Notes: generated from the letters alone by a model not told the origin. Shown: positions 6,944-63,509, numbered from the stretch's first letter. The stretch is DNA of 64,000 bases from Bispira polyomma (GCA_965649765.1 OZ287758.1:45198001-45262000), one strand, 5' to 3'. Program-made: numbers and translations.

Positions 6944-7789
6944 GTAAAAAAAAAAAGACATCAATATGACATTTGGGATATGGGGTGATGTTGATCTTCA
7001 AATATTGTCAAGACTAACTTTAAGTAGGTGTTTCTCAGAGGCGTTCACATTTGCTACAGCTATGCATAAGGTGGTTACCTTTTGTCTCTTTCATATTATC
7101 CACAGTATTTCACATTGCGTTTGTGTAGCTATTTTTTTGGTGAATTGTATGTTAGCCATATATTTTTTTTCCTTACATTTATTATCTAGTCTTCTATAAT
7201 TTTGGGTTACCCTTGTCTGGCATATGTTAATACTGAATTGATGCATGTGGTGAAAATATTGGAATATGGGTAGTTAGTATTTGTGATTCTGGAAATATTG
7301 TTGTGAATATTGAATAAAATAAGTAATTTATTATTTTTTCTTTTCAGAATAATGCACATTTTCTTTGAGACTTTTATGCGCATATAGGTACATCAGAGCT
7401 TTCGGGTTTTCCAAAAAGTTTCACATATGAATAGTTTATATGATATTAATATGGACTCATTGTGGAAAACAAAACAATATCAATGACACCTATCTTTTAC
7501 ATTCATCCCAATAAATAAAAAGGAAAATCTTTTAAAGTACAGTCATTTGGAGATTGCCAATCGGTGTGCATAATAGAGACCTTATGGAATAGAAGAGTTA
7601 TTGTAGTGTAAATAAATCAGATAATAGAAGTTTAATGTATTATATCTTCACTGAACTTTTATAGAAATTTATTATCAGGTTTATTAGATCCAAAACAAGT
7701 GAAACACTTTTTGTCACAGGACACAGCTGTGCTATTGACAAATGTACGTGTTAGCAGTCGCATTGACTATTGTAACTATTGCTAAGCAT

Positions 7790-8151
7790 ATTGTCTGCCA
7801 AGGACATGTCTCGCCTTCAAGCAATACAGAATTATACAGTATTCCCAAATGCCTCCTGTTCTCAAGATTTACTCTGCCTTCCTGGTAAATTTTAATGTAT
7901 GGTTAAAACTGCTACATTGGTCCAAAAGTGTTTCCATACAAGCCTCACAAAATACCTCAGCCCATATCTCACTCCTTACCTTTGATCGCCGCCTACACGA
8001 ATCAAATGTCAAATGTTTCAATCATAGTTCCTCATATGCTGCATCCAAGTTATGTAATGACCTCCCACAAGATACTAGGTGTTCACCTTTTCTTTCAACC
8101 TTCAGAAGCAAGCTCATGACTAATCTCTATCAAAAAGCTTATCCCACATGA
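7790..8151 (+). mobile_element. L2/CR1-type LINE ORF2 C-terminal relic (inverted copy at ~5530-5820)
   Basis: MSRLQAIQN and SYAASKLCNDLPQDTRCSPFLSTFRSKLMTNLYQKAY resemble the LQ.VQN and FS.AAP.LWN.LP..IR....L..FK..LKT.LF motifs of L2/CR1 ORF2. Confidence 0.65.
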
Positions 8152-11805: not shown

Positions 11806-11952
11806 CTACGGCACACAGACAAAGGCGTAGACATCGCCCAACTCTACCATTCCGCTGGTGACAGTCACAGTGATTTCACTTACACCCGCTTCACCCCCTG
11901 TAGGAATGGTGAGCTGCTTAGGCTGGACTGTAGTTGTGTCAGTAGTGGAAAA
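11806..11952 (-). CDS. Last coding exon: D part 3 (FSTTD...GVSEITV...YAFVCVP*)
   Basis: atttcag|TTT TCC ... CCG TAG TGA; paralogous to the second-half exons (VSEL/VSEI, terminal Cys-Val). Confidence 0.78.
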   Translation of the reverse strand, partial: FSTTDTTTVQPKQLTIPTGGEAGVSEITVTVTSGMVELGDVYAFVCVP

Positions 11953-14900
11953 CTGAAATCAGAGGTCAATACACAAATACATGAATGATGAATATACCTT
12001 TAAAAATGTTGCTTTTAAGTGAGTGTAAACTGATCGATTGAAGGTCTTCTTTCATTTATCACAGCCACTGTGACCTAGTGGTTAGCAATGTTAGCTTCGC
12101 AAGTACAGGACTAGCACCAGTGTGGGTTCAAGTTGGTTAAATTGATCCCTGTCTTTTTTAGTATCAATTCAGTCATGTCAAGATAGGCAAGAAAATTAGC
12201 ACAGTGGTGATGTGATAGTAACATTTCTAATTTTCTGTGGAGGATAGAGTTAACTGAGTGTTATAGATTTTTAGGGAAGTTTGGCAATAACAGCATTAAC
12301 ATGATTTGTGACCCTTCTATATTGCCTCCTGTCAAACCCAGATTATGTTCGACACCAGCGTAATCTGTCAGACTTTTGTTAAGTGAAGGCCTGATGAAAA
12401 AAAGGTGACATTAGTCATTATAAAAAACTGAAATAGATGTAGTTGTACCTATAATTTAAGGCAGTGTAAATGGTATATAAATACTATATATCACATATGT
12501 TGTTGTTCCTATAATCTTACAGGTAGTGTTGTGTAAATACTATATAAAAATAGTAAAAATATTTTTTTAGATATATGTACTGGTTCCTATAATTTACAGG
12601 TAGTGTAGTATAAACATTATAATATAACACATATGTAATGGTTCTTATAAGTTCCAAGCAGTGTAGTATAGATACTATTGAACAATGACAATCCAACATA
12701 CACTTTGTTGTACACTCCCAGCTGTCACTGTTACGTCTCCACTGCCTTGGATTCCAAAGGTGAAGGCCTTCACTGTATAAGGCTCTCCAAGGGTAGTGGA
12801 ACCTGTAGGAATTTATTGCATTTCTTATAATCAAATCTAGTATTTTTAAGGCACTAAATCCTCTCTACAAGATAACTCAAAGCACCATAACATCCTAATC
12901 AAATTCATAATAAAAAGGAAATAGCCAAAGTCGTCAAGAAAAAGATTAGAATTCAGCTAAGGAAAATAGAGGGATATGATGCAAAGATTTGGTTGAAAAG
13001 ATGAGACTAAAGGTAGTTCCCAAAAGATATAATGCTCTTTGCTATCATTATGGGTAGTGGACGATTATTCCAACAAGAATGAGTCAGATATGAGGCTGAT
13101 TTGTCGATATGACTAATGAGTGAATAACTGGACTTTTGTTTTATGTTTTGGAACCTTGAGAAAATGATAATATTTAGAGTCACTCGTGATGAACTGTATG
13201 GATGTATAAAATATTTTAGATAAACTGGCTAAAAGTTTTGTTTTGTAGATGAGGAGGTGCATTTTCAAAATGATTCCGTACAAAACAAGGAGTCTTGGTG
13301 AGTATTCGGCAAAAGTAGTTCTAAACAAACATGGGGGAAAAACTGGAAAAACATTGGGCAGGGAGTTGCAGTAGTATTATCAATCATACTCAGAGTACAT
13401 TTCAGTAATTAGTTACATCAGAGAAAAGAGAAACAAACTACTCATAGAGAGTAATTCAAAAGAAAAAAACAAAACAAAACATCAATACAAAATATATCAT
13501 CTGTTAACGATTATGATGTACCTCTTACAAATTTTTAATTGTTTTATATTATTTTATTATTGTACTGTTCATCTCCTACTGTGATATATATATATAAAAT
13601 TTATTATACTAAGAAATGTACACCAAAATTTGTTTCTGTGTGATTGACATGTTGGTATTAAAAGTGAATCAGTATGAAATCAATTCTTAATGATGTACAT
13701 GTTTGAAGCTTGCACCTTTGCACACATCATAATGTTTTTTGTTATATTTTAAAGTGACTAATGGATATGACAAGCAATATTATTTGTAACATAAAAAAGT
13801 ATATACTACTAAAAATCTTTATGTTTGATATACGCTAACTAAATAATTATACTATTGTATTAAGACCCTTGCTCCGGAACACAGACCAGTCTAGTGTAGC
13901 ATGTAATGCTACATACATAGTGTCTCGGATGACCACTTAAGACTTTTGACAAAGTGAAAATGTGCTTGTAAATTCTAATGCCGTGGTGACACTGGGCTTA
14001 GGTTTTGATTACACAAAAAATGGCTAACATAAGGTAAAACGTAATGAAATGTGAGCAGAATGTAGTGCATGTAAGTGAACATAAACATGCGTTACTAAGA
14101 TGGTCCCTTACTATCCCGTTATTTTTGGCTGTTTTCTAAAAACTTTCCTGAAATGGTTGGTGCGTTTGCGGGAAATGTACAACACATATTCAATGCGTAT
14201 TTAACTTAAAGGACACCAGACAAACTATACATCCAAATAATTTTTAAAACGAGCATAACGAGAACAAAATAGGTTCAGAAAGGTGGCTAACATATTATAA
14301 AACGTGGCCAACGATACAAACATAATTGAAACAGGAAAATTACTGAATGTGTTCAAAACAGCCCGTACATTGGGTTTTTTTTACGTTTCCCTGAATTTTC
14401 ACTTAGCTTGTCCCCCTTTTTTTACGTTTACGGAAATCAAAACGTACCAGACATAGCTCATTGTGACCAAGGCATGAGACTTGCTTATATTGCTATTAAA
14501 AGGTATTGTATACCAAGAATTACTGTGTCTAGAATTTATTTGGTATGTATACAGGTGCAGGTAAAACAGTTTGCTTTTTTAACTACTAACAATATACTTG
14601 CAATTATGCCACTATATTTGCATTTGCTGCAGTTATTGTCACTGATTTTGACAATGACATTTCAAAACTTAGAAAACTAACTTTGAAAATGTAGGACTTT
14701 GAAATGGCGCTGAGATGATTGAAGATAGATAAAGTGACATCCAACTTTGCTTTATCAATAAATTGATCATGAGGGGCCTAAAAACATTAACAGGGACAAA
14801 AACCGTGAAAAAGCTTCTCTGTGAGTACCTAATTCAAAGGTAAAATTTACTGTTGCATCTGGATCAAGCTTGAATATATTCGTAGCCCCTTCTTTTTGAA

Positions 14901-17900
14901 AGTAATGTTACTCACTATTGGCTATATAACATGAAAGAGCATCTGTATGTCATGAGGACAAAAATACAAAGGTGTTTGGTGGATTGGTATGAGGCAATTT
15001 ATTTTTCTTCATTTCAAGCATGACAAAGGCAATCACTAATTTCGAAAACATTCCACAAAACAAAAACACTTAGTAGTTTGCAAACCTTTGCCCTCAACCA
15101 ACAAGTTGAATAGGTTTATTAGCAACAGACGGAGACCTCTCAAAGCCGGCCATCTGAATGCATATCGATATGTAGATAAATAAGTTATTTGAACCCAAAA
15201 CCTACTTCCTAGTAGTACATGGTAAATACCTGTACACATTAAGTGCACCTTTGGTGCTCAGTATGCATTTAGCTGATATGCAGCACAATTTACTGGTTTC
15301 TTCCTTGGCACACAGTGCAACCCAAAAGTAACAGACAACAAATATACAAACAGATGGGTGAAAATATCTTTTATGTTTTTTTCATTTGCAGTTGTTATGC
15401 TCTGGTCTTTTATCCTGGACTGGCTAGCCGATAGAGTATCTGTACGTGGTAGATGGTCCCCAAAACAAATTCAAAATTAACAAATTTGGCAGAAGTCCAA
15501 TGAATTTGTCATGACAGACTCGTCACCACTGATACATAGTTAAAATGCAGTAAATTTTTTTTTTGGGTAAATTTCAATTATAAATATTTTTTGTATTTGG
15601 TGCTTTCAACTCTACTTTTTTAGCTCATCTAAACGATTTCCAATATATGTCCCTTTCGAATGACTGAACAAAAAAAAAAAGGTTCCTGTAGTTACACCTA
15701 TCAAAATGAACTGCTTTGTGATTAAGTTTGCTTGATGCCGATTTTGTTGACAAGTGATCACAACACTGTTAGACTAGTATCGTCTTGGACAGTATCGAGT
15801 GGTGAGATGATGTTTTCTGGCTTTTAGTATACACTTTGACCATAATGAATGAATACAGAGAGAGAGAGAGAGAGAGACCTACCCAATGTGTATGTGTCGC
15901 CTGCATCAAGTGAGATGGTTTGGTCAGAGTTGAGTAGAGCAAGTACTGGATCCACAAAGCTTAGAGGTTCAATGCTTAGAGTGAAGCCGTTACTGGAGAA
16001 GAAAGATTCCTGTGATGTGGAGGTGTCATCACATGCTGAAACCAAGGAGAACAGCTATAGTAGTACAATAATATGATTTTGAAGAATAGTAAAGGTTTTT
16101 AGCAGCCCAAGGGCTAATCTTGTTTGGTGGAGACCCTGACAAAATCAGGGTATTATTATAATCAGTTAACCTACAATAACCTACAATAAAATAAAACACT
16201 CATATACAATAAATTTAGTGAAAGTCCTGTTATTTAAATGTAATATTTTTAAAATTCCTTTATTGTTTTTATTGCATGAACAGAAGAACACATTAATACC
16301 ATATTAACCCTATACATAAGTAAAACAGAAACACATAAGTTTAAAAATAAACCTTAGTACAATACACAGCATAATGTAGTTTGGTGGTGATCTCACTTTT
16401 TTCAGAGAGATATTTCAGATTTCTAGACGTTTCTTCGTACCATTTTTTTCATAACAGAAGAATGGCTGTATGCAATTTAAAAATGCAAGTAGTTTCGAAT
16501 AGGTAGACAGAACAAATCCATTTGCTTACAAAGATTATGAAAGATGTGCATTTAAGTTTGAACTATTATAATTAGATAAAATATAAAATACAAATGATTT
16601 TATATTTAAAAAAGGTAGGCTATGCAACGCCCGCAAATACATCTTTTGCTCAATATAAAAAACACTGAAGAAAAAATGTGTGGCTGTTCTATCTTTGTGC
16701 AGTAGGCCCTGGAAGTAAAAAACATACCAGGTCACTGATTCTTTGGGGGCTGGCACAATAAGAATTTTAGCTCACTGGTAATATGGGTAAAACTATTCAT
16801 ATGTAAAAAGTTAATGTTGTCCCCTGTGGGTCATGGTACCACTTGACACATATTTCATTATTTAAAAACATGTATTCTTTTATTATAAAGACAAATGTCC
16901 TGCACATTAATTTATAGTCTTGAACTAGCCTCCACCAGTGATCCTACTTATTCCCATTGTTTAGTTCTTACAATGTGACAGTTACCATGAAGACCATTTT
17001 AAGGGTCATTTCAAGTGTCACTGGGTGCGTGTGATGCAACATTTGTAAAGGTCGTCCCATTGTTTAGCTTACAATGTTCTGTTTTGATTGCAATTAATTT
17101 AACTGGTCTAGTGATTAGGGTGCTGGTCTAGTTTTATTTGGTGGGATAAAATCTTTGGACAAGATATAAACATAAGTTTGCCTAGTGGCTGCAAATACCA
17201 GTTAAAATGATGGTCATATATTTTACTAATTTTACTAAGTAATATCTCCAGTGGCAGATTAAAGATCTTTGGGGACATTGATAAATGGTCATTCTTATGA
17301 AACCCTCGGCGCCCATAGTGGCTGCCCATGAGGATACCCTGTATTGTATAAGTGCACTATAACAAATATCCTAGTTCATTTTATTTTTCATTTTATTTTT
17401 CAATTGTACATCTCTTCGACATCTAGTATTTTAGTCTACATGGCTCTACACCCCAACTTGAGATAAGGTGACCATGAAGAATTTTGAAATAAAGGTGATA
17501 TAACTTGACATAAAGTCACCCAAACTTAAAGAAAAGGTAGTGAACTTTAAAGAGTGAGGGTGTTTTTAATTTTGTTTACGGTCACCCTTAGAAACAATTT
17601 ACTGAAGATATGGTTAAGTTTAAATAATATACAGTTGCCACATTCCACAAAATACTAAATCATGAACCATTACCATTACAAATGAGTACTAACAAGGCCA
17701 TAAATAGCCAAGCACACTTGCTGTAGGCCTGATTTGTTTTGTCCCTAAAAGCAGTTTTTAATCTAGTATTGGCTGTTTTGCTTAGGTATGTTTCTGAGTA
17801 CCTAAATTGACAAATTACAAGTCAACATTCAAGCAGTAGTGACTATTATTTTTGAAACCGGGAAAAAACATATGTGATAGGTAATTAGCGTAGACATTCT

Positions 17901-20900
17901 TAACTCCTGCTATGTGAATGAGTGCAAATTTAATGTTACGTCGAGCTGTTTCCAAACAAATGGATCTTGTCATTGTTGTTAGGCTCTGATCCCTCAAGCG
18001 ACTGAAGGTAAGAGAGTCTACCACTGCTGCGTTGTCACATCATACTTTGACAGTGGCATTTTTAAGTGATTGCCCCACATATGTGATAACACCACCAAAA
18101 CGATCCACATTTCAAAATGCACAATACCATAGTCATGAGGTTTTGAGAGGGGGGGGGGATGACAGCATATACACTGCTGTCTCACATACACATAGCCCTA
18201 ATGACCTGCGACGAGGTGTCAACATGTACTTAATGAACATCACCACTTGTTAAGTAACAATAATGACTGCACTGTACTCACCAAGGCTTGTCACTGGGTT
18301 GTCTAAAATAAAACAAAGTGAGACACATTTAAATTTTGTCAGACAATTAAGTTATAACTAGAAAGACACTAAGTAGAGCACCAGCCCCAGCAAACCCCCC
18401 CCCCCTCCCCACCCCCCAAAAAATAAAATAAAAAATAAAATAAAAAATAATTAAACAAAGAAAAAAAGTTATTTTTTTTCTAGGAACCACCCTTCTGCCA
18501 GCCTCAATAGACCACCATATTACAACACCAAATTTCATATACATTTGCTCAGTAGGTTTTTGTGTGTAATCTTGATGACAAACAGACAAACCAACAGAGA
18601 GAGACGCTACATAACGTCCTTGGTAGAGGTAGCAGAAAATGATGACCTTGACAAATGACCATGTCCACAATATAGTACCAATAATCAAATTGCTTTAGAG
18701 GAATGGCTAAAAGTGAACTTCCTAAAGCTATTATTAAATAAAATGATTAGCAATGGTTTTATGATGTTAGAGGTGTTGAATATTTATTTATTTAAATTGT
18801 ACTAAAATTGTAAAGTGCTATATAAAGGTATATAAGTGCTTTATAAATGTAATGTTATGCCAATAAAATACTCATCCTAATACATATACTGTTGAAATAA
18901 TAGATAATGAAAAAAAAATAGATAATTTGAAAACACAATTCTGAAGTACTGGTGCTGATTGGCTGTACTTTGGCAGTTGGAAAAAAGCTAATGACCGTGA
19001 CTGAAAACGATAAAGGTACATTAATATGTAAAGTATAGCAAACAAAAGAGGTAATTCTTTAAAGTTGATCCATTTTAGAGTGAACCTTCAACATACCAAA
19101 CATTTCCATTAAAACATATAAACTGGCTCCCAATTAACTATTGTATGTACATTTTAATTTACCTGTTGTGACATTAAAAAAACGACATATATATTTGCAA
19201 TATTGTTTGACTACAGGTTTAACTACTATCTGTATTAAAGTTTGCAATTTCAGTTACTGTGAGCATCGAAGAAAGCCATGGGATGTCCATTAATGAACAT
19301 CTCCAAGGTTCTTGAAGCCTGCCACCAGAGTTAGGGCCCAATGAAAGAGGACCATATGTAGTGGTCACTTGAGCCACAATGTGTCTGTTTGTACTTGAAC
19401 CAAACTAATATTTAACTAACAGGAGCGAACAAACATGCAAATGTCTGACATTTTAAGAGATCAAATCGACTCACCTACACAACCTGTTACCAGTATATTG
19501 GACAAAATTGCACTCTCGCCTTTTGGCCTAAACTGCTTGAGACGTACTATGGTAACATTGTATATCTTCCCTCCCAGGTCAAACTCGATATCATGCTCCT
19601 CAGATTCATCTAATTGGCTCTAAATAATAGACACTGTAAGATTTACTTTGTAACCAGGCTTACAATTTTCAAAAAATCAAAACAGTTGCTATAGACGCAA
19701 TAGAAGTAAATCATGTAAATATATATCAACATATATATGTGTGTCGTTTTCAAGGTAAGCGTATTGAGTTCCAGGACAGATATTCACACATTTTTTTCAG
19801 GAAACAACATATTTCACTCTTTGGTCAAAATGTACGAGAAAATTTGAACATTGCTAAAGAATGAGAGTCTTAAAACTTATGACATTATGGGGACAAATCT
19901 AAAAAAAAATGCTCGAGTTATGCTAAGAATTAACAGTGTATAGACCTGGTTTTAGTTCATAAGTATGTGTAGTGGATGTAGTAGTTACTGTTAATGTAGG
20001 ATTGGAAACAGGTTGAGATGGAATAGCATATTTTGTAACCCAAATAGCTGAAATTGTGTTCAGCAACCCTGATACTGGTTTCTATTACTTGTAAAATTTT
20101 AAGATGCTACATCTTGAACTGCCAAAAAGACAAAACTGATCTTAAATATAGTAAATGTGAGAAAAATGAATAATTGAATAGTACGTGACCAAATAAATCT
20201 ATTCTCATCTATTCAATACAATAAAAAAAATAAATTTTCTACCAATACCGAGCAAATTGTTATAGCTCTTTTTGATTAATGATTAATTTGACGTTTTTCA
20301 TGGTGGTAAATATCTTTACACTCACAAACTGTTGAGTGGGCTTGGATGTGTTAGCTATCAACACCATTTTGACACTGGTTACACGCTGAACTGTTGCAGA
20401 AAAACTAAGCAGGTCGAATGGCTCCCTGTTAGACCGTTGTATCCAGATATTGTCACCCGCTGGCTTAATGTAAGTTCTTCCTGATCCAGCAGCAGCAGCA
20501 TTGGGTTCTGGATCTTCTACATCCTTTGTACGAATAATTTCCAAGTCTAACTGATTGAAGGTGGATGTAATAAAGCGTTTTCCCTCTGGACAGTCATCTA
20601 TTGGACGAGCTGCAGTAAAACATTTGAGTGAATTATGATTATTCTGTCTGATGTCTATGTTGATTAATTTACTTGGGTTTTAACATTGCTGTCAACAGGC
20701 TTTTGTCAGATTCTAACCATCAGTTCACTGGTGGGGGAAATCAGAACAGGGTAATTGCTCAAGGTTCCCTGCTATGTGAACCTAGTCTACTGACATCTTT
20801 ACCATACAAAGACCAAGGCCTAAATTCGAACCCATGATGGTACAGGTGAGGGAAGTGTCGTAATATTACACCAAATAGGGCAAGTACCTGACACACATTC

Positions 20901-53900: not shown

Positions 53901-56900
53901 GTGTAGTGGTGGTTGGTGTAGTGGTGGTTGGTGTAGTAGTGGTTGGTGTAGTTGTGGTAGGTGTAGTGGTGGTAGGTGTAGTGGTGGTTGGTGTAGTGGT
54001 GGTTGGTGTTGTGGTGGTAGGTGTAGTGGTGGTTGATGAAGATGTGAGAAGTGGAATACCTGTAACAGTCAAATATATATAATATATACCTAATACATTA
54101 AATGAACAATCGAGATTATGGTATTTAATACAAATTATGTTGAATTAAATAGGCTTTTTATACAAATAAATATCAACAATACTTACATCCAAGGACTTTG
54201 AGCTGAGATACCCTAACAGCAGGCTTGTTGGTCAATGCTGGTACCAAGCTATTGATTTTGACACGTTCAACTGTTTGAGGCAAGTCTTTTTTAAAACACT
54301 GCAAATTGCTTTCATCAAAGGCCTGAAATATATGTCATATATATTTATAAAAACAGAGTGTGATGTAGCTCTTTAGCGTATGTTGTAATATTTGTGGGCA
54401 TATATGATGCACAAACAATTTAATCTGGGCTATTTGTATTTTTATTAGTCATTGACAGTGACATTTTTGCATGTTTATAAAGTGAATATTTTAGGGTATC
54501 GTAAAACAGGGAGTAGATATTGTCTAAATTCTTCTTTGAATTCATCAATAAGTCTGTTTGAAGTACCTCATTTCTGTGTGCCGTCTTGCCAATTTTATGG
54601 TATCGGTAAAACATAATATCCTAGCTAGTGATCAGCAAAATCTTCTTAAGTTTGTGACCAGATTTCATGCTGATGGTTAAAACCAAATCTACAATGCTTC
54701 CTATGATGTGTGCTTGGAAATTTACCAATTGATCCAAGTCATTTTTGATAGATAATAAGCACCTGATTGGAAGGTTTACTCTATTGGTCAGATTAAAATC
54801 CAACACTTGTGCAATACATTTTGAGGGTGCACAGGACAGGCGTACACATATATCTATACTAGTGTTGAAATCAGATAGATTAATACAGTTTTGTATGTAT
54901 ACTTAAAATAAATTAGAAAGTCTCCACAAAGCAATGCAACAAACCTTTTTGTCTTTTACATTTTGATGTGCAAGTCCAAAATCCAACACCAAATTGCCAG
55001 ATACAGCATTTTCAATATGAACACAAAACATTAAAACTCGAAAGCTTTGCAAATTTGACATTTGTATCAATATGTTATTTTTAGGAATGCTTGTGTCTAA
55101 TTCATACGATGTTGTTAAATCAAATGCAGCTTTCTGTACTTCAATATTAGAAAGATTAAGTTTAAGGAGAATTTGAAGGTCTCCACTACCATTGCGACTG
55201 GAAACAAAGGTTTCATTTTGAAAACAGCTGACTAAGGGCATTAAGATGGTTGGTGTAGTAGTGGTTGGTGTAGTGGTTGTTGGTGTAGTTGTGGTTGGTG
55301 TAGTGGTGGTTGGCGTAGTGGTGGTTGGTGTTGTGGTGGTAGGTGTAGTGGTGGTAGGTGTAGTGGTGGTAGGTGTTGTGGTGGTAGGTGTGGTGGTGGT
55401 AGGTGTAGTAGTGGTTGGTGTTGTGGTGGTAGGTGTTGTGGTGGTAGGTGTAGTGGTGGTTGGTGTTGTGGTGGTAGGTGTAGTGGTGGTAAGTGTAGTG
55501 GTGGTAGATGTAGTGGTAGTTGGTGTAGTAGTGGTAGGTGTTGTGGTGGTAGGTGTAGTGCTGGTAGGTGTAGTGGTGGTTGGTGTAGTGGTGGTTGGTG
55601 TTGTGGTAATATGTGTAGTGGTGGTTGGTGTAGTAGTGGTTGGTGTAGTGGTGGTAGGTGTAGTGGTGGTAGGTGTAGTAATGGTAGGTGTAGTGGTGGT
55701 AGGTGTAGTGGTGGTTGGTGTAGTGGTGGTAGGTGTAGTAATGGTAGGTGTAGTGGTGGTAGGTGTAGTGGTGGTAGGTGTAGTGGTGGTTGGTGTAGTG
55801 GTGGTTGGTGTTGTGGTGGTAGGTGTAGTGGTGGTTGATGAAGATGTGAGAAGTGGAATACCTGTAACAGTCAAATATATATAATATATACCTAATACAT
55901 TAAATGAACAATCGAGATTATGGTATTTAATACAAATTATGTTGAATTAAATAGGCTTTTTATACAAATAAATATCAACAATACTTACATCCAAGGACTT
56001 TGAGCTGAGATACCCTAACAGCAGGCTTGTTGGTCAATGCTGGTACCAAGCTATTGATTTTGACACGTTCAACTGTTTGAGGCAAGTCTTTTTTAAAACA
56101 CTGCAAATTGCTTTCATCAAAGGCCTGAAATATATGTCATATATATTTATAGAAACAGAGTGTGATGTAGCTCTTTAGCGTATGTTGTAATATTTGTGGG
56201 CATATATGATGCACAAACAATTTAATCTGGGCTATTTGTATTTTTATTAGTCATTGACAGTGACATTTTTGCATGTTTATAAAGTAAATATTTTAGGGTA
56301 TCGTAAAACAGGGAGTAGATATTGTCTAAATTCTTCTTTGAATTCATCAATAAGTCTGTTTGAAGTACCTCATTTCTGTGTGCCGTCTTGCCAATTTTAT
56401 GGTATCGGTAAAACATAATATCCTAGCTAGTGATCAGCAAAATCTTCTTAAGTTTGTGACCAGATTTCATGCTGATGGTTAAAACCAAATCTACAATGCT
56501 TCCTATGATGTGTGCTTGGAAATTTACCAATTGATCCAAGTCATTTTTGATAGATAATAAGCACCTGATTGGAAGGTTTACTCTATTGGTCAGATTAAAA
56601 TCCAACACTTGTGCAATACATTTTGAGGGTGCACAGGACAGGCGTACACATACATCTATACTAGTGTTGAAATCAGATAGATTAATACAGTTTTGTATGT
56701 TTACTTAAAAAAATTAGAAAGTCGCCACATAGCAATGCAACAAACCTTTTTGTCTTTTACATTTTGATGTGCAAGTCCAAAATCCAACACCAAATTGCCA
56801 GATACAGCATTTTCAATATGAACACAAAACATTAAAACTCGAAAGCTTTGCGAATTTGACATTTGTATCAATATGTTATTTTTAGGAATGCTTGTGTCTA

Positions 56901-59900
56901 ATTCATACGATGTTGTTAAATCAAATGCAGCTTTCTGTACTTCAATATTAGAAAGATTAAGTTTAAGGAGAATTTGAAGGTCTCCACTACCATTGCGACT
57001 GGAAACAAAGGTTTCATTTTGAAAACAGCTGACTAAGGGCATTAAGATGGTTGGTGTAGTAGTGGTTGGTGTAGTGGTTGTTGGTGTAGTTGTGGTTGGT
57101 GTAGTGGTGGTTGGCGTAGTGGTGGTTGGTGTTGTGGTGGTAGGTGTAGTGGTGGTAGGTGTAGTGGTGGTAGGTGTTGTGGTGGTAGGTGTGGTGGTGG
57201 TAGGTGTAGTAGTGGTTGGTGTTGTGGTGGTAGGTGTTGTGGTGGTAGGTGTAGTGGTGGTTGGTGTTGTGGTGGTAGGTGTAGTGGTGGTAAGTGTAGT
57301 GGTGGTAGATGTAGTGGTAGTTGGTGTAGTAGTGGTAGGTGTTGTGGTGGTAGGTGTAGTGCTGGTAGGTGTAGTGGTGGTTGGTGTAGTGGTGGTTGGT
57401 GTTGTGGTAATATGTGTAGTGGTGGTTGGTGTAGTAGTGGTTGGTGTAGTGGTGGTAGGTGTAGTGGTGGTAGGTGTAGTAATGGTAGGTGTAGTGGTGG
57501 TAGGTGTAGTGGTGGTTGGTGTAGTGGTGGTAGGTGTAGTAATGGTAGGTGTAGTGGTGGTAGGTGTAGTGGTGGTAGGTGTAGTGGTGGTTGGTGTAGT
57601 GGTGGTTGGTGTTGTGGTGGTAGGTGTAGTGGTGGTTGATGAAGATGTGAGAAGTGGAATACCTGTAACAGTCAAATATATATAATATATACCTAATACA
57701 TTAAATGAACAATCGAGATTATGGTATTTAATACAAATTATGTTGAATTAAATAGGCTTTTTATACAAATAAATATCAACAATACTTACATCCAAGGACT
57801 TTGAGCTGAGATACCCTAACAGCAGGCTTGTTGGTCAATGCTGGTACCAAGCTATTGATTTTGACACGTTCAACTGTTTGAGGCAAGTCTTTTTTAAAAC
57901 ACTGCAAATTGCTTTCATCAAAGGCCTGAAATATATGTCATATATATTTATAGAAACAGAGTGTGATGTAGCTCTTTAGCGTATGTTGTAATATTTGTGG
58001 GCATATATGATGCACAAACAATTTAATCTGGGCTATTTGTATTTTTATTAGTCATTGACAGTGACATTTTTGCATGTTTATAAAGTAAATATTTTAGGGT
58101 ATCGTAAAACAGGGAGTAGATATTGTCTAAATTCTTCTTTGAATTCATCAATAAGTCTGTTTGAAGTACCTCATTTCTGTGTGCCGTCTTGCCAATTTTA
58201 TGGTATCGGTAAAACATAATATCCTAGCTAGTGATCAGCAAAATCTTCTTAAGTTTGTGACCAGATTTCATGCTGATGGTTAAAACCAAATCTACAATGC
58301 TTCCTATGATGTGTGCTTGGAAATTTACCAATTGATCCAAGTCATTTTTGATAGATAATAAGCACCTGATTGGAAGGTTTACTCTATTGGTCAGATTAAA
58401 ATCCAACACTTGTGCAATACATTTTGAGGGTGCACAGGACAGGCGTACACATACATCTATACTAGTGTTGAAATCAGATAGATTAATACAGTTTTGTATG
58501 TTTACTTAAAAAAATTAGAAAGTCGCCACATAGCAATGCAACAAACCTTTTTGTCTTTTACATTTTGATGTGCAAGTCCAAAATCCAACACCAAATTGCC
58601 AGATACAGCATTTTCAATATGAACACAAAACATTAAAACTCGAAAGCTTTGCGAATTTGACATTTGTATCAATATGTTATTTTTAGGAATGCTTGTGTCT
58701 AATTCATACGATGTTGTTAAATCAAATGCAGCTTTCTGTACTTCAATATTAGAAAGATTAAGTTTAAGGAGAATTTGAAGGTCTCCACTACCATTGCGAC
58801 TGGAAACAAAGGTTTCATTTTGAAAACAGCTGACTAAGGGCATTAAGATGGTTGGTGTAGTAGTGGTTGGTGTAGTGGTTGTTGGTGTAGTTGTGGTTGG
58901 TGTAATGGTGGTAGGTGTAGTGGTGGTAGGTGTAGTGGTGGTAGGTGTTGTGGTGGTAGGTGTAGTGGTGGTAGGTGTAGTGGTGGTTGGTGTTGTGGTG
59001 GTAGGTGTAGTGGTGGTAGGTGTAGTGGTGGTAGGTGTTGTGGTGGTAGGTGTGGTGGTGGTAGGTGTAGTAGTGGTTGGTGTTGTGGTGGTAGGTGTTG
59101 TGGTGTTAGGTGTAGTGGTGGTTGGTGTTGTGGTGGTAGGTGTAGTGGTGGTAAGTGTAGTGGTGGTAGATGTAGTGGTAGTTGGTGTAGTAGTGGTAGG
59201 TGTTGTGGTGGTAGGTGTAGTGCTGGTAGGTGTAGTGGTGGTTGGTGTAGTGGTGGTTGGTGCTGTGGTAATATGTGTAGTGGTGGTTGGTGTAGTGGTG
59301 GTTGGTGTAGTAGTGGTTGGTGTAGTGGTGGTAGGTGTAGTGGTGGTAGGTGTAGTGGTGGTAGGTGTAGTGGTGGTTGGTGTAGTGGTGGTTGGTGTTG
59401 TGGTGGTAGGTGTAGTAATGGTAGGTGTAGTGGTGGTTGATGAAGATGTGAGAAGTGGAATACCTGTAACAGTCAAATATATATAATATATACCTAATAC
59501 ATTAAATGAACAATCGAGATTATGGTATTTAATACAAATTATGTTGAATTAAATAGGCTTTTTATACAAATAAATATCAACAATACTTACATCCAAGGAC
59601 TTTGAGCTGAGATACCCTAACAGCAGGCTTGTTGGTCAATGCTGGTACCAAGCTATTGATTTTGACACGTTCAACTGTTTGAGGCAAGTCTTTTTTAAAA
59701 CACTGCAAATTGCTTTCATCAAAGGCCTGAAATATATGTCATATATATTTATAAAAACAGAGTGTGATGTAGCTCTTTAGCATGTGTTGTAATATTTGTG
59801 GGCATATATGATGCACAAACAATTCAGTCTGGGCTATTTGTATTTTTATTAGTCATTGACAGTGACATTTTTGCATGTTTATAAAGTAAATATTTCAGGG

Positions 59901-62900
59901 TATTGTAAAACAGGGAGTAGATATTGTCTAAATTCTTCTTTGAATTCATCAATAAGTCTGTTTGAAGTACCTCATTTCTGTGTGCCGTCTTGCCAATTTT
60001 ATGGTATTGGTGATACATAATATCCTAGCTAGTGATCTGCAAAACCTTCTTAAGTTTGTGACCAAATTTCATGCTGATGGTTAAAACCAAATCTACAATG
60101 CTTCCTATGATGTGTGTTTGGAAATTTACCAATTGATCCAAGGCATTTTTGATAGATAATAAGCACCTGATTGGAAGGTTTACTCTATTGGTCAGATTAA
60201 AATCCAACACTTGTGCAATACATTTTGAGGGTGCACAGGACAGGCGTACACATATATCTATACTAGTGTTGAAATCAGATAGATTAATACAGTTTTGTAT
60301 GTTTACTTAAAAAAAATTAGAAAGTCGCCACATAGCAATGCAACAAACCTTTTTGTCTTTTACATTTTGATGTGCAAGTCCAAAATCCAACACCAAATTG
60401 CCAGATACAGCATTTTCAATATGAACACAAAACATTAAAACTCGAAAGTTTTGCGAATTTGACATTTGTATCAATATGTTATTTTTAGGAATGCTTGTGT
60501 CTAATTCATACGATGTTGTTAAATCAAATGCAGCTTTCTGTACTTCAATATTAGAAAGATTAAGTTTAAGGAGAATTTGAAGGTCTCCACTACCATTGCG
60601 ACTGGAAACAAAGGTTTCATTTTGAAAACAGCTGACTAAGGGCATTAAGATGGTTGGTGTAGTAGTGGTTGGTGTAGTGGTGGTTGGTGTAGTGGTGATT
60701 GGTGTAGTGGTGGTTGGCGTAGTGGTGGTCGGTATAGTGGTGGTAGGTGTAGTGGTGGTAGGTGTAGTTGTGGTTGCTGTAGTGGTGGTAGGTGTAGTTG
60801 TGGTAGGTGTTGTGGTGGTAGGTGTAGTTGTGGTAGGTGTTGTGGTGGTAGGTGTAGTGGTGGTAGGTGTAGTGGTGGTTGGTGTTGTGGTGGTTGGTAT
60901 TGTGGTGGTAGGTGCTGTGGTGGTAGGTGTAGTAGTGGTTGGTGTTGTGGTGGTTGGTGTAGTTGTGGTTGGTGTAGTGGTGGTTGGTGTAGTGGTGGTT
61001 GGTATAGTAGTGGTAGGCGTAGTGGTGGTAGGTGTAGTTGTGGTAGGTGTTGTGGTGGTTGGTGTAGTGGTGGTTGGTGTTGTGGTGGTAGGTGTAGTGG
61101 TGGTAGGTCTAGTGGTGGTAGGTGTAGTGGTGGTAAGTATAGTGGTGGTAGATGTAGTGGTAGTTGGTGTAGTAGTGGTAGGTGTTGTGGTGGTAGGTGT
61201 AGTGCTGGTAGGTGTAGTGGTGGTTGGTGTAGTGGTGGTTGGTGTTGTGGTAATATGTGTAGTGGTGGTTGGTGTAGTGGTGGTTGGTGTAGTAGTGGTT
61301 GGTGTAGTGGTGGTAGGTGTAGTGGTGGTAGGTGTAGTAATGGTAGGTGTAGTGGTGGTAGGTGTAGTGGTGGTTGGTGTAGTGGTGGTTGGTGTTGTGG
61401 TGGTAGGTGTAGTAATGGTAGGTGTAGTGGTGGTTGATGAAGATTTGAGAAGTGGAATACCTGTAACAGTCAAATATATATAATATATACCTAATACATT
61501 AAATGAACAATCGAGATTATGGTATTTAATACAAAATATGTTGAATTAAATAAGCTTTTTATACAAATAAATATCAACAATACTTACATCCAAGGACTTT
61601 GAGCTGAGATACCCTAACAGCAGGCTTGTTGGTCAATGCTGGTACCAAGCTATTGATTTTGACACGTTCAACTGTTTGAGGCAAGTCTTTTTTAAAACAC
61701 TGCAAATTGCTTTCATCAAAGGCCTGAAATATATGTCACATATATTTATAAAAACAGAGTGTGATGTAGCTCTTTAGCGTATGTTGTAATATTTGTGGGC
61801 ATATATGATGCACAAACAATTTAATCTGGGCTATTTGTATTTTTATTAGTCATTGACAGTGACATTTTTGCATGTTTATAAAGTAAATATTTTAGGGTAT
61901 CGTAAAACAGGGAGTAGATATTGTCTAAATTCTTCTTTGAATTCATCAATAAGTCTGTTTGAAGTACCTCATTTCTGTGTGCCGTCTTGCCAATTTTATG
62001 GTATCGGTAAAACATAATATCCTAGCTAGTGATCAGCAAAATCTTCTTAAGTTTGTGACCAGATTTCATGCTGATGGTTAAAACCAAATCTACAATGCTT
62101 CCTATGATGTGTGCTTGGAAATTTACCAATTGATCCAAGTCATTTTTGATAGATAATAAGCACCTGATTGGAAGGTTTACTCTATTGGTCAGATTAAAAT
62201 CCAACACTTGTGCAATACATTTTGAGGGTGCACAGGACAGGCGTACACATACATCTATACTAGTGTTGAAATCAGATAGATTAATACAGTTTTGTATGTT
62301 TACTTAAAAAAATTAGAAAGTCGCCACATAGCAATGCAACAAACCTTTTTGTCTTTTACATTTTGATGTGCAAGTCCAAAATCCAACACCAAATTGCCAG
62401 ATACAGCATTTTCAATATGAACACAAAACATTAAAACTCGAAAGCTTTGCGAATTTGACATTTGTATCAATATGTTATTTTTAGGAATGCTTGTGTCTAA
62501 TTCATACGATGTTGTTAAATCAAATGCAGCTTTCTGTACTTCAATATTAGAAAGATTAAGTTTAAGGAGAATTTGAAGGTCTCCACTACCATTGCGACTG
62601 GAAACAAAGGTTTCATTTTGAAAACAGCTGACTAAGGGCATTAAGATGGTTGGTGTAGTAGTGGTTGGTGTAGTGGTGGTTGGTGTAGTTGTGGTTGGTG
62701 TAGTGGTGGTTGGCGCAGTGGTGGTTGGTATAGTGGTGGTAGGTGTAGTGGTGGTAGGTGTAGTTGTGGTTGCTGTAGTTGTGGTTGGTGTAGTTGTGGT
62801 AGGTGTTGTGGTGGTTGGTGTTTTGGTGGTAGGTGTAGTGGTGGTAGGTGTAGTGGTGGTAGGTGTTGTGGTGGTAGGTGTAGTGGTGGTTGGTGTTGTG

Positions 62901-63509
62901 GTGGTAGGTGTAGTGGTGGTAAGTGTAGTGGTGGTAGATGTAGTGGTAGTTGGTGTAGTAGTGGTAGGTGTTGTGGTGGTAGGTGTAGTGCTGGTAGGTG
63001 TAGTGGTCGTTGGTGTAGTGGTGGTTGGTGTTGTGGTAATATGTGTAGTGGTGGTTGGTGTAGTGGTGGTTGGTGTAGTAGTGGTTGGTGTAGTGGTGGT
63101 AGGTGTAGTGGTGGTAGGTGTAGTAATGGTAGGTGTAGTGGTGGTAGGTGTAGTGGTGGTTGGTGTAGTGGTGGTTGGTGTTGTGGTGGTATGTGTAGTA
63201 ATGGTAGGTGTAGTGGTGGTTGATGAAGATGTGAGAAGTGGAATACCTGTAACAGTCAAATATATATAATATATACCTAATACATTAAATGAACAATCGA
63301 GATTATGGTATTTAATACAAATTATGTTGAATTAAATAGGCTTTTTATACAAATAAATATCAACAATACTTACATCCAAGGACTTTGAGCTGAGATACCC
63401 TAACAGCAGGCTTGTTGGTCAATGCTGGTACCAAGCTATTGATTTTGACACGTTCAACTGTTTGAGGCAAGTCTTTTTTAAAACACTGCAAATTGCTTTC
63501 ATCAAAGGC
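11806..63509 (-). CDS. Giant mucin-like protein (5'-truncated by window): PTS tracts alternating with 21 copies of a Cys-bracketed ~140-aa domain; 45 exons, >=5,046 aa
   Basis: All exons listed below have AG/GT boundaries with compatible phases. Summed length is 15,141 nt, a multiple of 3, ending in TAG at 11806-11808. Order N->C: (PTS-B)x7, A', A, C, A, A, C, A, A, C, A, C, A, C, microexon, D. Confidence 0.85.
12063..12140 (+). mobile_element. tRNA-derived SINE head (degenerate)
   Basis: A-box-like TGACCTAGTGG and B-box-like GGTTCAAGT; a similar head occurs at ~38875-38945. Confidence 0.4.
12440..12675. repeat. Intronic minisatellite, ~4 x ~70 bp
   Basis: Recurrent gttcctataat..acaggtagtgt core. 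Confidence 0.65.
12702..12802 (-). CDS. Exon: D part 2 (GSTTLGEPYTVKAFTFGIQG...VQQS)
   Basis: cctacag|GT TCC ... AGT|gtatgt, 101 nt, phase 1-0; matches the FTLKRFCF / EPFDLLSF strand. Confidence 0.75.
13979..14474. mobile_element. Non-autonomous Harbinger-type MITE
   Basis: TIRs TGCCGTGGTGACACTGGGCT / AGCTCATTGTGACCAAGGCA, flanked by TAA and TGA (degenerate TWA target duplication). Confidence 0.5.
15857..15877. repeat. (AG)n microsatellite
   Basis: About 10 AG units adjoining the donor of exon 15883-16035. Confidence 0.9.
15883..16035 (-). CDS. Exon: terminal D domain part 1 (ACDDTSTSQESFFSSNGF...DTYTL)
   Basis: ttggtttcag|CA TGT ... TTG G|gtaggt, 153 nt; aligns by eye to the A domain (F-x-SN-x-F, P-x-x-A, SD-x-x-I, YTL). 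Confidence 0.75.
17660..18230 (-). mobile_element. DIRS-like (tyrosine-recombinase) retrotransposon relic: RNase H plus start of YR ORF
   Basis: HVDTSS, V*CDNAAVV and HIAGVKNVYANYLS match the RNase H motifs DAS / DN..VV / H.AG..N..AD.LS; followed by AFRDKTNQAYSK, resembling the YR N-terminus; stops and frameshifts present. Confidence 0.6.
18282..18302 (-). CDS. 21-nt microexon (linker DNPVTSL)
   Basis: ctttgttttattttag|AC AAC CCA GTG ACA AGC CTT G|gtgagt; phase 1-1, strong sites. Confidence 0.6.
18357..18631 (+). mobile_element. Helentron/HINE-like non-autonomous element
   Basis: ACTAG start, ccaaatttca core, acagac-type short repeats, ccttggtagaggta end. Confidence 0.4.
19475..19619 (-). 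CDS. Exon: C second half
   Basis: 145 nt, phase 0-1. Confidence 0.85.
20326..20609 (-). CDS. Exon: C first half
   Basis: 284 nt, phase 1-0. Confidence 0.85.
20665..21150 (-). mobile_element. Two adjacent old SINEs in the intron between A and C, co-amplified (also ~24620, 28320, 33555, 39235)
   Basis: Minus-strand B-box GGGTTCGAAT, tgtgggacag..tttcctccaccagtaaaactg body and gttaaaac tails, similar to the SINE at 21548. Confidence 0.55.
21237..21372 (-). CDS. Exon: A second half
   Basis: 136 nt, phase 0-1. Confidence 0.85.
21548..21791 (+). mobile_element. tRNA-derived SINE with target-site duplication
   Basis: A box TGGCCAAGTGG, B-box-like CTCGAATCC; ctagaaaaccg duplicated on both sides; the six paralogous introns lack the insert. 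Confidence 0.85.
22057..22556 (-). CDS. Exon: PTS + A first half
   Basis: 500 nt, phase 1-0. Confidence 0.85.
23445..23589 (-). CDS. Exon: C second half
   Basis: 145 nt, phase 0-1. Confidence 0.85.
24282..24565 (-). CDS. Exon: C first half
   Basis: 284 nt, phase 1-0. Confidence 0.85.
25193..25328 (-). CDS. Exon: A second half
   Basis: 136 nt, phase 0-1. Confidence 0.85.
25745..26253 (-). CDS. Exon: PTS + A first half
   Basis: 509 nt, phase 1-0. Confidence 0.85.
27143..27287 (-). CDS. Exon: C second half
   Basis: 145 nt, phase 0-1. Confidence 0.85.
27980..28263 (-). CDS. Exon: C first half
   Basis: 284 nt, phase 1-0. Confidence 0.85.
28891..29026 (-). CDS. Exon: A second half
   Basis: 136 nt, phase 0-1. 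Confidence 0.85.
29436..29944 (-). CDS. Exon: PTS + A first half
   Basis: 509 nt, phase 1-0. Confidence 0.85.
30449..30584 (-). CDS. Exon: A second half (variant ...IIACN)
   Basis: 136 nt, phase 0-1. Confidence 0.85.
31005..31513 (-). CDS. Exon: PTS + A first half
   Basis: 509 nt, phase 1-0. Confidence 0.85.
32380..32524 (-). CDS. Exon: C second half
   Basis: 145 nt, phase 0-1. Confidence 0.85.
33217..33500 (-). CDS. Exon: C first half
   Basis: 284 nt, phase 1-0. Confidence 0.85.
34128..34263 (-). CDS. Exon: A second half
   Basis: 136 nt, phase 0-1. Confidence 0.85.
34673..35181 (-). CDS. Exon: PTS + A first half
   Basis: 509 nt, phase 1-0. Confidence 0.85.
35686..35821 (-). CDS. Exon: A second half (variant ...IIACN)
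   Basis: 136 nt, G|gtaagg donor. Confidence 0.85.
36242..36750 (-). CDS. Exon: PTS + A first half
   Basis: taacag|AG AAG ACC ... ACA|gtaagt, 509 nt. Confidence 0.85.
37619..37763 (-). CDS. Exon: C second half (SRLDASEKH...LVTGCV)
   Basis: atttag|AGC ... GTA G|gtgagt, 145 nt, phase 0-1; not in the ORF track. Confidence 0.85.
38457..38740 (-). CDS. Exon: C first half (ARPIDDCPEGKRF...PTQQF)
   Basis: ctccag|CT CGT ... TTT|gtgagt, 284 nt, phase 1-0. Confidence 0.85.
39812..39947 (-). CDS. Exon: A second half (VLITKPAELNCF...IIACV)
   Basis: taaag|GTA ... GTT G|gtaaga, 136 nt. Confidence 0.85.
40366..40895 (-). CDS. Exon: PTS + A first half
   Basis: ttgtag|AT ACT ... ACA|gtaagt, 530 nt; acceptor chosen by phase compatibility. 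Confidence 0.8.
41420..41555 (-). CDS. Exon: A' second half (VVITKPGELRCI...IIGCT)
   Basis: tttcag|GTA ... ACT G|gtaaga, 136 nt. Confidence 0.85.
43334..44607 (+). pseudogene. Harbinger DDE transposase (HARBI1/DDE_Tnp_4-like) pseudogene
   Basis: WVKPWI, ATGESY..LSYQFRVGRSTI, GSIDGKRVAI, FFNYEGFHSIVLLALVDADY, LLGDDAF and NYRISRGRRV motifs, broken by stops and frameshifts. Confidence 0.9.
45197..45467. repeat. ~3 x ~95 bp minisatellite inside the Harbinger element
   Basis: Recurrent gtgtaatctgttt and ttgaact.tgggcca. Confidence 0.65.
45555..46860 (-). pseudogene. Harbinger Myb/SANT-like (MADF) DNA-binding protein pseudogene
   Basis: VDFVRNNEVLYN..FKDK....LWEEFA...VKTWFESQHTHFGKL..KKSGQG; acidic N-terminus, frameshifted S/Q-rich C-terminus. 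Confidence 0.85.
48476..48819 (-). CDS. Exon: short PTS + A' first half (IVCSVNEVF...QGSSTTTET)
   Basis: ttaaag|GT ATT CCT ... ACA|gtaagt, 344 nt, phase 1-0; clear paralogue of the A exons. Confidence 0.85.
49822..49957 (-). CDS. Exon: B second half (AFNENKLQCF...VLGC)
   Basis: tttcag|GCC ... T|gtaagt, 136 nt. Confidence 0.85.
50284..51162. mobile_element. 879-bp non-autonomous TIR element with TTAA duplication (Kolobok-like MITE)
   Basis: Perfect 21-bp TIR GGGTTTAGTAACGTAAACACA, TTAA on both sides; seven paralogous introns show the empty site cttcTTAAgtttg. Confidence 0.9.
51461..52242 (-). CDS. Exon: (PTTTT)n + B first half (divergent edge copy)
   Basis: 782 nt, phase 1-0. Confidence 0.87.
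52370..52505 (-). CDS. Exon: B second half
   Basis: 136 nt, phase 0-1. Confidence 0.85.
52603..52989 (-). mobile_element. L2/CR1 LINE endonuclease relic, repeated in every B-unit intron
   Basis: LDFNL (GDFN), LDQLVNFPTHIVGSIVDLVLT (Q.V..PTH..G..LDLVLT) and LKYLLYKHA (LLDKHAP) motifs; copies at 54420, 56222, 58023, 59824, 61821, 63607, and split by the MITE at ~50050-51320. Confidence 0.7.
53128..54059 (-). CDS. Exon: (PTTTT)n + B first half
   Basis: 932 nt, phase 1-0. Confidence 0.87.
54187..54322 (-). CDS. Exon: B second half
   Basis: 136 nt, phase 0-1. Confidence 0.85.
54945..55861 (-). CDS. Exon: (PTTTT)n + B first half
   Basis: 917 nt, phase 1-0. Confidence 0.87.
55989..56124 (-). CDS. 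Exon: B second half
   Basis: 136 nt, phase 0-1. Confidence 0.85.
56746..57662 (-). CDS. Exon: (PTTTT)n + B first half
   Basis: 917 nt, phase 1-0. Confidence 0.87.
57790..57925 (-). CDS. Exon: B second half
   Basis: 136 nt, phase 0-1. Confidence 0.85.
58547..59463 (-). CDS. Exon: (PTTTT)n + B first half
   Basis: 917 nt, phase 1-0. Confidence 0.87.
59591..59726 (-). CDS. Exon: B second half
   Basis: 136 nt, phase 0-1. Confidence 0.85.
60349..61460 (-). CDS. Exon: (PTTTT)n + B first half
   Basis: 1112 nt, phase 1-0. Confidence 0.87.
61588..61723 (-). CDS. Exon: B second half
   Basis: 136 nt, phase 0-1, same splice sites as the other copies. Confidence 0.85.
62345..63246 (-). CDS. Exon: (PTTTT)n + B-domain first half
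   Basis: ttacag|GT ATT CCA ... AAA AAG|gtttgt, 902 nt, phase 1-0. Confidence 0.87.
63374..63509 (-). CDS. Exon: B-domain second half (AFDESNLQCF...SQLKVLGC)
   Basis: tttcag|GCC ... GGA T|gtaagt, 136 nt, phase 0-1. Confidence 0.85.

Follow-up and report, generated by a model that had tools for sequence, protein, structure and literature searches.

The 64,000-nucleotide stretch of the Bispira polyomma genome analysed here (GCA_965649765.1 OZ287758.1:45198001-45262000; the window) carries what we consider likely to be the 3' fifth, i.e. the last ~5,000 residues, of a giant gene on the minus strand that encodes a secreted glycoprotein of the mucin type, in which repeated globular modules would form glycan-binding beads of the galactose-binding-domain (GBD)-like kind. 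Judged from its sequence, the locus is a real, lineage-restricted secreted mucin. Among the evidence for this reading are a single open frame assembled from canonical exons in the window, its continuation upstream through a giant threonine/proline exon to a putative signal peptide, and similarity to a second species that is confined to the predicted exons.

Within the window, which is eukaryotic DNA of about 35% GC with zero N, the gene runs from 63509 to 11806 in 44-45 exons (Table 1): eight B C-terminal exons, seven that join a proline-, threonine- and serine-rich (PTS) tract to a B module, two A', 14 A, ten C and 3-4 D exons. These were found by boundary homology and by eye, independently of the junctions given in a preliminary description of the same DNA; one unit was read base by base and its boundaries carried to all copies by homology, with divergent copies placed by eye. 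An AG acceptor and a GT donor were present at all 44-45 exons, with phases 1/0/1. When joined (exons were concatenated in script only, for frame, length, composition and cysteine counts, and all searches were run exon by exon), they form one open frame of 15,150-15,171 nt, a range that arises because exon D3 may end at any of three GT donors. The only stop is the TAG at 11808-11806, which follows ..YAFVCVP, so that the protein ends ..GDVYAFVCVP. The independent rebuild thus bears out the canonical GT-AG sites and matching phases of the preliminary description and reproduces both its first acceptor at 63509 and its module order, (PTS-B)7-A'-A-C-A-A-C-A-A-C-A-C-A-C-D, i.e. 21 A, B and C modules plus D. 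Its single frame ending YAFVCVP* also stands, but not the length of 15,141 nt, which is 9-30 nt shorter than ours; at least one junction must therefore differ between the two models.

Two exons make up the coding sequence of each module. The first, the N exon, is entered in phase 1 and left in phase 0, and comprises a PTS linker, where there is one, followed by about 95 domain residues; the C exon, of 136 or 145 nt (about 45-48 residues), is left in phase 1. Between ~51.4 and 63.3 kb lie seven near-identical 1.8-kb units, each containing a (TTTTP)n array with a 15-nt period, 31-52 copies and 0% indels that reads in frame into about 95 non-repetitive residues; from 19.4 to 41 kb the repeating units measure 3.7 and 5.2 kb and are 92-98% identical in DNA sequence across exons and introns alike. 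The array has expanded through recent tandem duplications in which entire exon-intron cassettes were copied and, since every cassette is phase-symmetric, copy number may change or cassettes be skipped with the frame intact. Exon D2 is doubtful, because it lies inside a 2.1-kb insertion that has no counterpart in a neighbouring paralogue (gene U, below) and D1 joins D3 in frame without it. Two kinds of candidate were rejected, namely an exon-like, Thr-rich open segment ('..TVTTTSTTHT..') at 24071-23880, with copies between C-module exons, which has neither phase-compatible canonical sites nor cross-species similarity, and plus-strand open reading frames (ORFs) over the PTS tracts (VVVVG.., GGWCS..), which are reverse-frame artefacts of the repeat.

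Taking in 280 kb of sequence upstream of the window (positions there are given as extended coordinates, which count on past the window) supported the earlier proposal that the gene continues in the 5' direction. Adjoining the window is a giant exon at extended coordinates 124921-64131, 60.8 kb in length and open for 20,311 codons, with a composition of 48% Thr and 44% Pro, i.e. (Thr-Pro)n. Its 3' end is, in frame, the N part of B module 1. Codon position 2 is C in 95% of cases, position 3 is free (ACA/ACT for Thr; CCA/CCC/CCT/CCG for Pro), and all higher-order repeat periods are multiples of 3; the codon-position pattern and these periods support a coding reading, for which the pattern is a better argument than openness of the frame. 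The giant exon is entered in phase 1, with its acceptor at extended coordinate 124921. An ATG exon, MAPVFILMLLLVPGST+G|GTAAGT, is located about 5.9 kb upstream of this acceptor; it encodes a 16-residue signal peptide (judged by eye) and ends in the matching phase 1, and a TATA-like box precedes its ATG by about 175 nt. Both the box and the exon are conserved in gene U, where the homologous exon is MAPFVVIMLVLVHPST+G|GTAGGT. The search for a signal peptide or VWD domains in a 5' extension, as the preliminary description had suggested, thus yielded the former and, as far as the 5' end could be read by eye, none of the latter.

The full model comprises 47 exons and 75,990-76,011 nt with one stop, and encodes about 25,330 residues, of which 22,065 (87%) are PTS and 3,272 globular; the earlier figure of >5,000 residues was, once the giant exon is counted, a five-fold underestimate. 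To our knowledge, a chain of about 25,000 residues is among the longest animal proteins, and we know of no described exon as long as this 60.8-kb coding exon.

Comparison with a tandem paralogue and a second species provides support of a different kind. Gene U lies upstream on the same strand, with its own signal-peptide exon, a 13,389-codon (40-kb) PTS exon built from TTTEAPTTTVAP-type repeats, 12 modules of the E type carried on cassettes of 3.2-3.4 kb, and then B, A and C modules. Because it also has its own D exons, ending ..YTFVCVP and followed by a stop, and because its 3' flank is homologous to that of the mucin gene, the two are separate genes, and the possibility that the upstream array forms part of the same gene was rejected. 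All module copies found in the 1.04-Gb genome sit in this one locus. Searching 1.84 billion representative proteins with the N-exon profile returned five exon-sized fragments only, each a singleton cluster; the two with contigs that were looked up both derive from ENA assembly ERZ22147071, which represents a second species. Both contigs contain two-exon modules of the same kind, arranged C-A-C and E-B-C, and the donor positions of module exons are identical there and in gene U. Over a 7-kb stretch of the window, DNA similarity to the second species is confined to predicted exons, and the ratio of non-synonymous to synonymous substitution rates (dN/dS) is 0.11-0.31, with dS near saturation; the exon model is on these grounds more than chance. 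The case for the A, B and C exons being real and functional rests chiefly on these data; in the searches made, the module family appears restricted to this locus and, so far, two species.

The N-exon parts of the A, A', B and C types align mutually at 17-27% identity, and align also with the upstream E type, with the first Cys present in every module sequence that reaches its column and one Phe invariant, and the C-exon parts align likewise, ending ..LS.(I/V).(V/I).G-C with a C-terminal G/A-C. Modules are about 140 residues long with Cys at both ends; A and B have four Cys and C and D two, an even number in every case. The codon for the last Cys of B is interrupted by the intron, and each B module carries three N-glycosylation sequons. 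D opens with Cys, closes ..FVCVP, and looks like a longer, divergent member of the family. A, B, C and D are thus, by alignment, best described as subtypes of one two-exon module and not as different domains, which retains the 21 copies of a single globular domain counted in the preliminary description and, with D from the same family, makes them 22.

That this domain is unassigned, as also claimed earlier, held in Pfam and in a PDB sequence-profile search, the latter returning nothing. Pfam scans of representative exons and of all 20 N-exon and 22 C-exon sequences gave only scattered, inconsistent matches above E = 0.02 (DUF4788, DUF4369 and others), and among the same 42 sequences there was no match to PF00754 (F5/8 type C) up to E = 10, a limit at which the HMMER filters drop most hits above about 0.1. 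The best score in an ESM Atlas feature search was 0.84, below the meaningful level. Aligning the module family with hhalign to one F5/8 type C domain from the same genome gave a probability of 0.3%, and neither Pfam nor hhalign revealed a lectin-family sequence motif in the module. (The comparison sequence, L034:712-2757 (+) on G000:C2, is a single-exon 681-residue ORF in which one F5/8 type C domain is accompanied by weak PAN-domain matches.) A scan of JGI metagenomes with the C-type profile and an Rfam search of the whole window both returned nothing.

A lead on the fold came from structure prediction, for which the N-exon parts were folded alone, so that all matches are partial-domain matches. 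The C-type model had a predicted local distance difference test (pLDDT) score of 66 and the B-type model one of 75, with all five B-type models in agreement. Structure matches for both were almost only to CBM32, F5/8 type C (bacterial and human), discoidin I, neuropilin b1, the DDR2 DS domain, F-type lectins, DOC and IFT25, most of those in the PDB being carbohydrate-binding modules, and the top rows of an Atlas shape search were F5/8 type C clusters. The models align to the first 85-95 residues of 126-160-residue domains, as would be the case if the remaining strands came from the C exon. Cys residues near both ends of a domain of ~130-160 residues, which in the F5/8 type C family form a disulfide, are present in the module as residues, a bond not being implied. 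Predicted pairing between the N-exon and C-exon halves of one module (0.37, against 0.36 for the control) counts neither way. On balance, the module is probably a very divergent galactose-binding-domain-like sandwich, which we regard as a lead and not as an assignment.

Several observations weigh against the reading of the locus as a secreted mucin with GBD-like beads. Every exon junction is predicted from genome sequence, and glycosylation, secretion and binding are predictions; support from the second species is limited to the A, B and C exons and does not extend to the signal-peptide exon, the giant exon or D. An open frame of 60.8 kb is itself weak evidence, because Thr and Pro codons cannot become stops in one step and 6-nt slippage keeps the frame. 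With respect to the GBD-like fold, Foldseek against the PDB with the first model was blank, and the hhalign comparison described above was likewise negative.

Long tandem repeats of Thr, Ser and Pro, which characterise the mucin class, are present as the seven arrays and the giant exon, and entry into the secretory pathway, another attribute of the class, is indicated by the signal-peptide exon as read by eye. Mucins have been described as a functional and not an evolutionary class, with the gain of exonic PTS repeats creating new lineage-specific mucins (PMC9417175), and all are reported to harbour a large exon with a variable number of tandem repeats (PMC13345508). In the scans of ten representative exon ORFs and the 42 module-exon sequences there was no Pfam match to VWD, CysD, cystine knot or SEA; D4 was scanned in this way, whereas only composition or inspection by eye was used for exon 1, D1-D3 and the giant exon. 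No hydrophobic run resembling a transmembrane segment was present in the window part of the protein. These absences are as the preliminary description had stated for this part of the gene. At its 5' end the model passes from the signal peptide directly into PTS sequence (by eye), and at its 3' end it terminates in the D module. The protein accordingly appears to be neither a gel-forming mucin, defined by VWD-C8-TIL units and a cystine knot, nor a transmembrane mucin, in which SEA or NIDO/AMOP/VWD domains are combined with a transmembrane helix and a cytoplasmic tail. The preliminary description proposed a distinct, probably secreted mucin with a multivalent binding or cross-linking domain in the position of CysD; the predicted secreted, mucin-type character is supported by the signal peptide and the lack of a transmembrane run, whereas for the putative binding role there is a weak structural resemblance of partial module models to GBD-like folds.

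Known systems resemble this protein in part. Like the gel-forming mucins MUC2, MUC5AC and MUC5B, it would be secreted and has a very large central PTS exon and PTS sequence broken by a small repeated Cys-containing domain, a position that is occupied in gel-forming mucins by CysD (PMC4948705). Unlike them, it has no VWD-C8-TIL, VWC or cystine-knot match in the exons scanned, the model contains no further exons, and its module, with two or four Cys, differs from CysD in having no Pfam match, including to Mucin2_WxxW. Cys counts are even and the protein has no known polymerising domain, so that polymerisation through disulfides is not expected. Mucin-like proteins of lophotrochozoans are reported to carry F5_F8 domains as a characteristic feature (PMC4948705). 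The partial module models resemble the F5/8 type C and CBM32 folds, and Cys residues cap both ends, as in the hemolectin-like lophotrochozoan and arthropod relatives with F5/8 type C; those proteins are, however, built on VWD and their F5/8 type C domains match Pfam, whereas the worm module gives no VWD, PF00754 or hhalign signal. In the secreted intestinal mucins and peritrophins of invertebrates, beads of the chitin-binding CBM14 domain, a small six-Cys knot, alternate with PTS linkers and provide multivalent, non-covalent cross-linking of a glycan matrix. The worm gene shares this beads-on-a-string design but has no CBM14 match and is one to two orders of magnitude larger. With orphan mucins that arise by PTS repeat gain it has in common repeated exonic units that change in copy number, its cassettes being 92-98% identical, but here the unit is an exon-intron cassette with a folded domain, and the largest tract is a (TP)n dipeptide repeat of about 20,000 residues. 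The combination of PTS tracts with a small repeated domain is that of CysD-bearing gel-forming mucins; what sets this gene apart is the module family, the lack of a polymerising domain, the mode of growth by cassettes, and the scale.

Taken together, the model suggests the following organisation. A 16-residue signal peptide would be followed by about 20,160 residues of (Thr-Pro)n from the single 60.8-kb exon, then by eight B modules set between (TTTTP)n tracts of about 160-260 residues, and then by A-type and five C-type modules with PTS linkers of <=70 residues and the terminal D module. The PTS parts would be densely O-glycosylated and form an extended thread, which could be microns long if extended, and the modules would be beta-sandwiches of the galactose-binding-domain-like kind, making the C-terminal fifth a multivalent array with 22 copies per chain, possibly of lectin-like beads. 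Such modules may be glycan binders that link mucin chains, particles or tube material to one another without covalent bonds, and these links would replace the disulfide polymerisation of VWD/cystine-knot mucins. Lectin-like cross-linking is a property that we only infer, from partial models, and the specific proposal that the mucin gels without disulfide polymerisation, through binding of the 22 GBD-fold modules to O-glycans of neighbouring chains, is speculative and we think it quite unlikely as stated.

Among other explanations, the one to be taken most seriously, if still an unlikely one, accepts the same gene and protein and regards the modules as inert beads, i.e. spacers, protease-resistant knots or N-glycan carriers in a lubricating or hydrating brush with no cross-linker. 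SEA-like or CysD-like inserts are often assumed to be inert spacers; the three sequons per B module and the lack of a lectin-family motif would fit such a role, and the GBD-like fold is also used by non-lectins, DOC, IFT25 and neuropilin b1 being among the structure matches. However, carbohydrate-binding modules make up most of the PDB matches, and the dN/dS of 0.11-0.31 together with the maintenance of five subtypes suggests more than a spacer. Slightly less likely, in our estimate, is that the product belongs not to mucus but to the solid or adhesive matrix of another secretion, such as a tube lining or cement, a cuticle, or an egg or jelly coat; a signal peptide without an anchor would suit this equally, but the composition, at 87% PTS, is not the DOPA (3,4-dihydroxyphenylalanine)/Gly/Lys-rich or phosphoserine type of a cement.

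Two explanations concern the gene model itself. The (TP)n tract or parts of the array may lie outside the mature mRNA, owing to the use of another promoter, the skipping of a cassette or a minisatellite that is in fact intronic, or the tract may have been inflated by misassembly, in which case the product would fall far below 25,000 residues. We consider such over-joining improbable. The model was built from genome sequence, the phase symmetry of its cassettes would allow any of them to be skipped without a frameshift, one exon, D2, already appears spurious, and stops and frameshifts are intrinsically rare in arrays of Thr and Pro codons; against this, the tract shows the codon-position pattern, its repeat periods are all multiples of 3, its frame continues at the 3' end into a B module and its acceptor fits the signal-peptide exon in phase, gene U shares the layout with a different 40-kb PTS exon, and there is no N in the region. 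That the locus is instead a decaying or unexpressed tandem array, i.e. a pseudogene, would be compatible with very young repeats and a model built from genome sequence, but is scarcely credible in the face of a ~76-kb frame with a single stop, canonical splice sites at 47 exons, purifying selection relative to the second species and the conserved, promoter-proximal signal-peptide exon.

Table 1. Exons of the mucin gene in window coordinates, from 5' to 3' on the minus strand, with the tandem paralogue listed last in coordinates of G000:C11, where the window spans 45198001-45262000.
Feature	Coordinates	Strand	Remarks
B C-terminal exon, 136 nt, phase 0 to 1	63374..63509	-	AG/GT; completes B module 1, N part beyond window
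(TTTTP)n PTS + N part of B module 2	62345..63246	-	
B C-terminal exon	61588..61723	-	
PTS + N part of B module 3	60349..61460	-	
B C-terminal exon	59591..59726	-	
PTS + N part of B module 4	58547..59463	-	
B C-terminal exon	57790..57925	-	
PTS + N part of B module 5	56746..57662	-	
B C-terminal exon	55989..56124	-	
PTS + N part of B module 6	54945..55861	-	
B C-terminal exon	54187..54322	-	
PTS + N part of B module 7	53128..54059	-	
B C-terminal exon	52370..52505	-	
PTS + N part of B module 8	51461..52242	-	
B C-terminal exon, last	49822..49957	-	
A' N exon, short PTS + N part	48476..48819	-	
A' C-terminal exon	41420..41555	-	after 6.9-kb intron with MADF-domain ORF
A N exon	40366..40895	-	
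A C-terminal exon	39812..39947	-	
C N exon, without PTS	38457..38740	-	
C C-terminal exon	37619..37763	-	
A N exon	36242..36750	-	
A C-terminal exon	35686..35821	-	
A N exon	34673..35181	-	
A C-terminal exon	34128..34263	-	
C N exon	33217..33500	-	
C C-terminal exon	32380..32524	-	
A N exon	31005..31513	-	
A C-terminal exon	30449..30584	-	
A N exon	29436..29944	-	
A C-terminal exon	28891..29026	-	
C N exon	27980..28263	-	
C C-terminal exon	27143..27287	-	
A N exon	25745..26253	-	unit read directly; cross-species similarity
A C-terminal exon	25193..25328	-	unit read directly
C N exon	24282..24565	-	unit read directly; cross-species similarity, dN/dS
C C-terminal exon	23445..23589	-	unit read directly; cross-species dN/dS
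A N exon	22057..22556	-	homology; cross-species similarity
A C-terminal exon	21237..21372	-	
C N exon	20326..20609	-	homology; cross-species similarity
C C-terminal exon	19475..19619	-	homology; cross-species similarity
D exon 1, phase 1 to 1	15883..16035	-	conserved in paralogue U
D exon 2, 63 nt, phase 1 to 1, doubtful	14829..14891	-	2.1-kb insertion, none in paralogue U
D exon 3	12714..12802	-	donor ambiguous: GT after 12735, 12729 or 12714, all phase 0
Last exon, D4	11806..11952	-	..YAFVCVP, then TAG at 11808-11806
Paralogue gene U	G000:C11, about 45,364,800-45,535,300 (loci L013-L032)	-	upstream of mucin gene, same strand

Other elements were observed in and around the gene. A MADF DNA-binding domain (Pfam E = 9e-7) is encoded by an ORF at 46293-46826 (-) within the 6.9-kb A' intron; this ORF, which has neighbouring ORFs at 45555-46180 (-), is probably part of a transposable element. 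Downstream of the stop is an inverted repeat (5786-6652 / 6955-7814) with arms of about 865 bp at 96.7% identity and a ~300 bp spacer, which may be a foldback-type element, and 1268-2204 is a dispersed repeat with >50 copies on many chromosomes at 80-89% identity. An element of ~255 bp resembling a short interspersed nuclear element occurs in and upstream of intron 1, at extended coordinates 127,860-128,120, 137,290-137,550, 139,585-139,840 and 142,354-142,600 (loci L009-L010), and also upstream of the giant exon of gene U, with 84-93% identity.

Mucus biology has been built almost wholly on vertebrate VWD/cystine-knot and SEA/transmembrane mucins, and our literature search found no paper giving the protein identity of annelid mucus or tube matrices. 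The locus described here provides a concrete candidate: its gene model is complete, with start, putative signal peptide and stop, and its domain family is new and under purifying selection. It is also a clear case of growth by duplication of phase-symmetric exon-intron cassettes, shows how far the expansion of a coding dipeptide repeat can reach (about 20,000 residues in one exon), and indicates that gene predictors and protein databases evidently miss such genes. Finally, it supplies a testable idea for network formation without disulfide polymerisation: were the modules to bind the O-glycans of neighbouring chains, the same molecule would be both ligand and multivalent receptor, and animals would have a further way, independent of the first, to build a mucus or tube-forming network.

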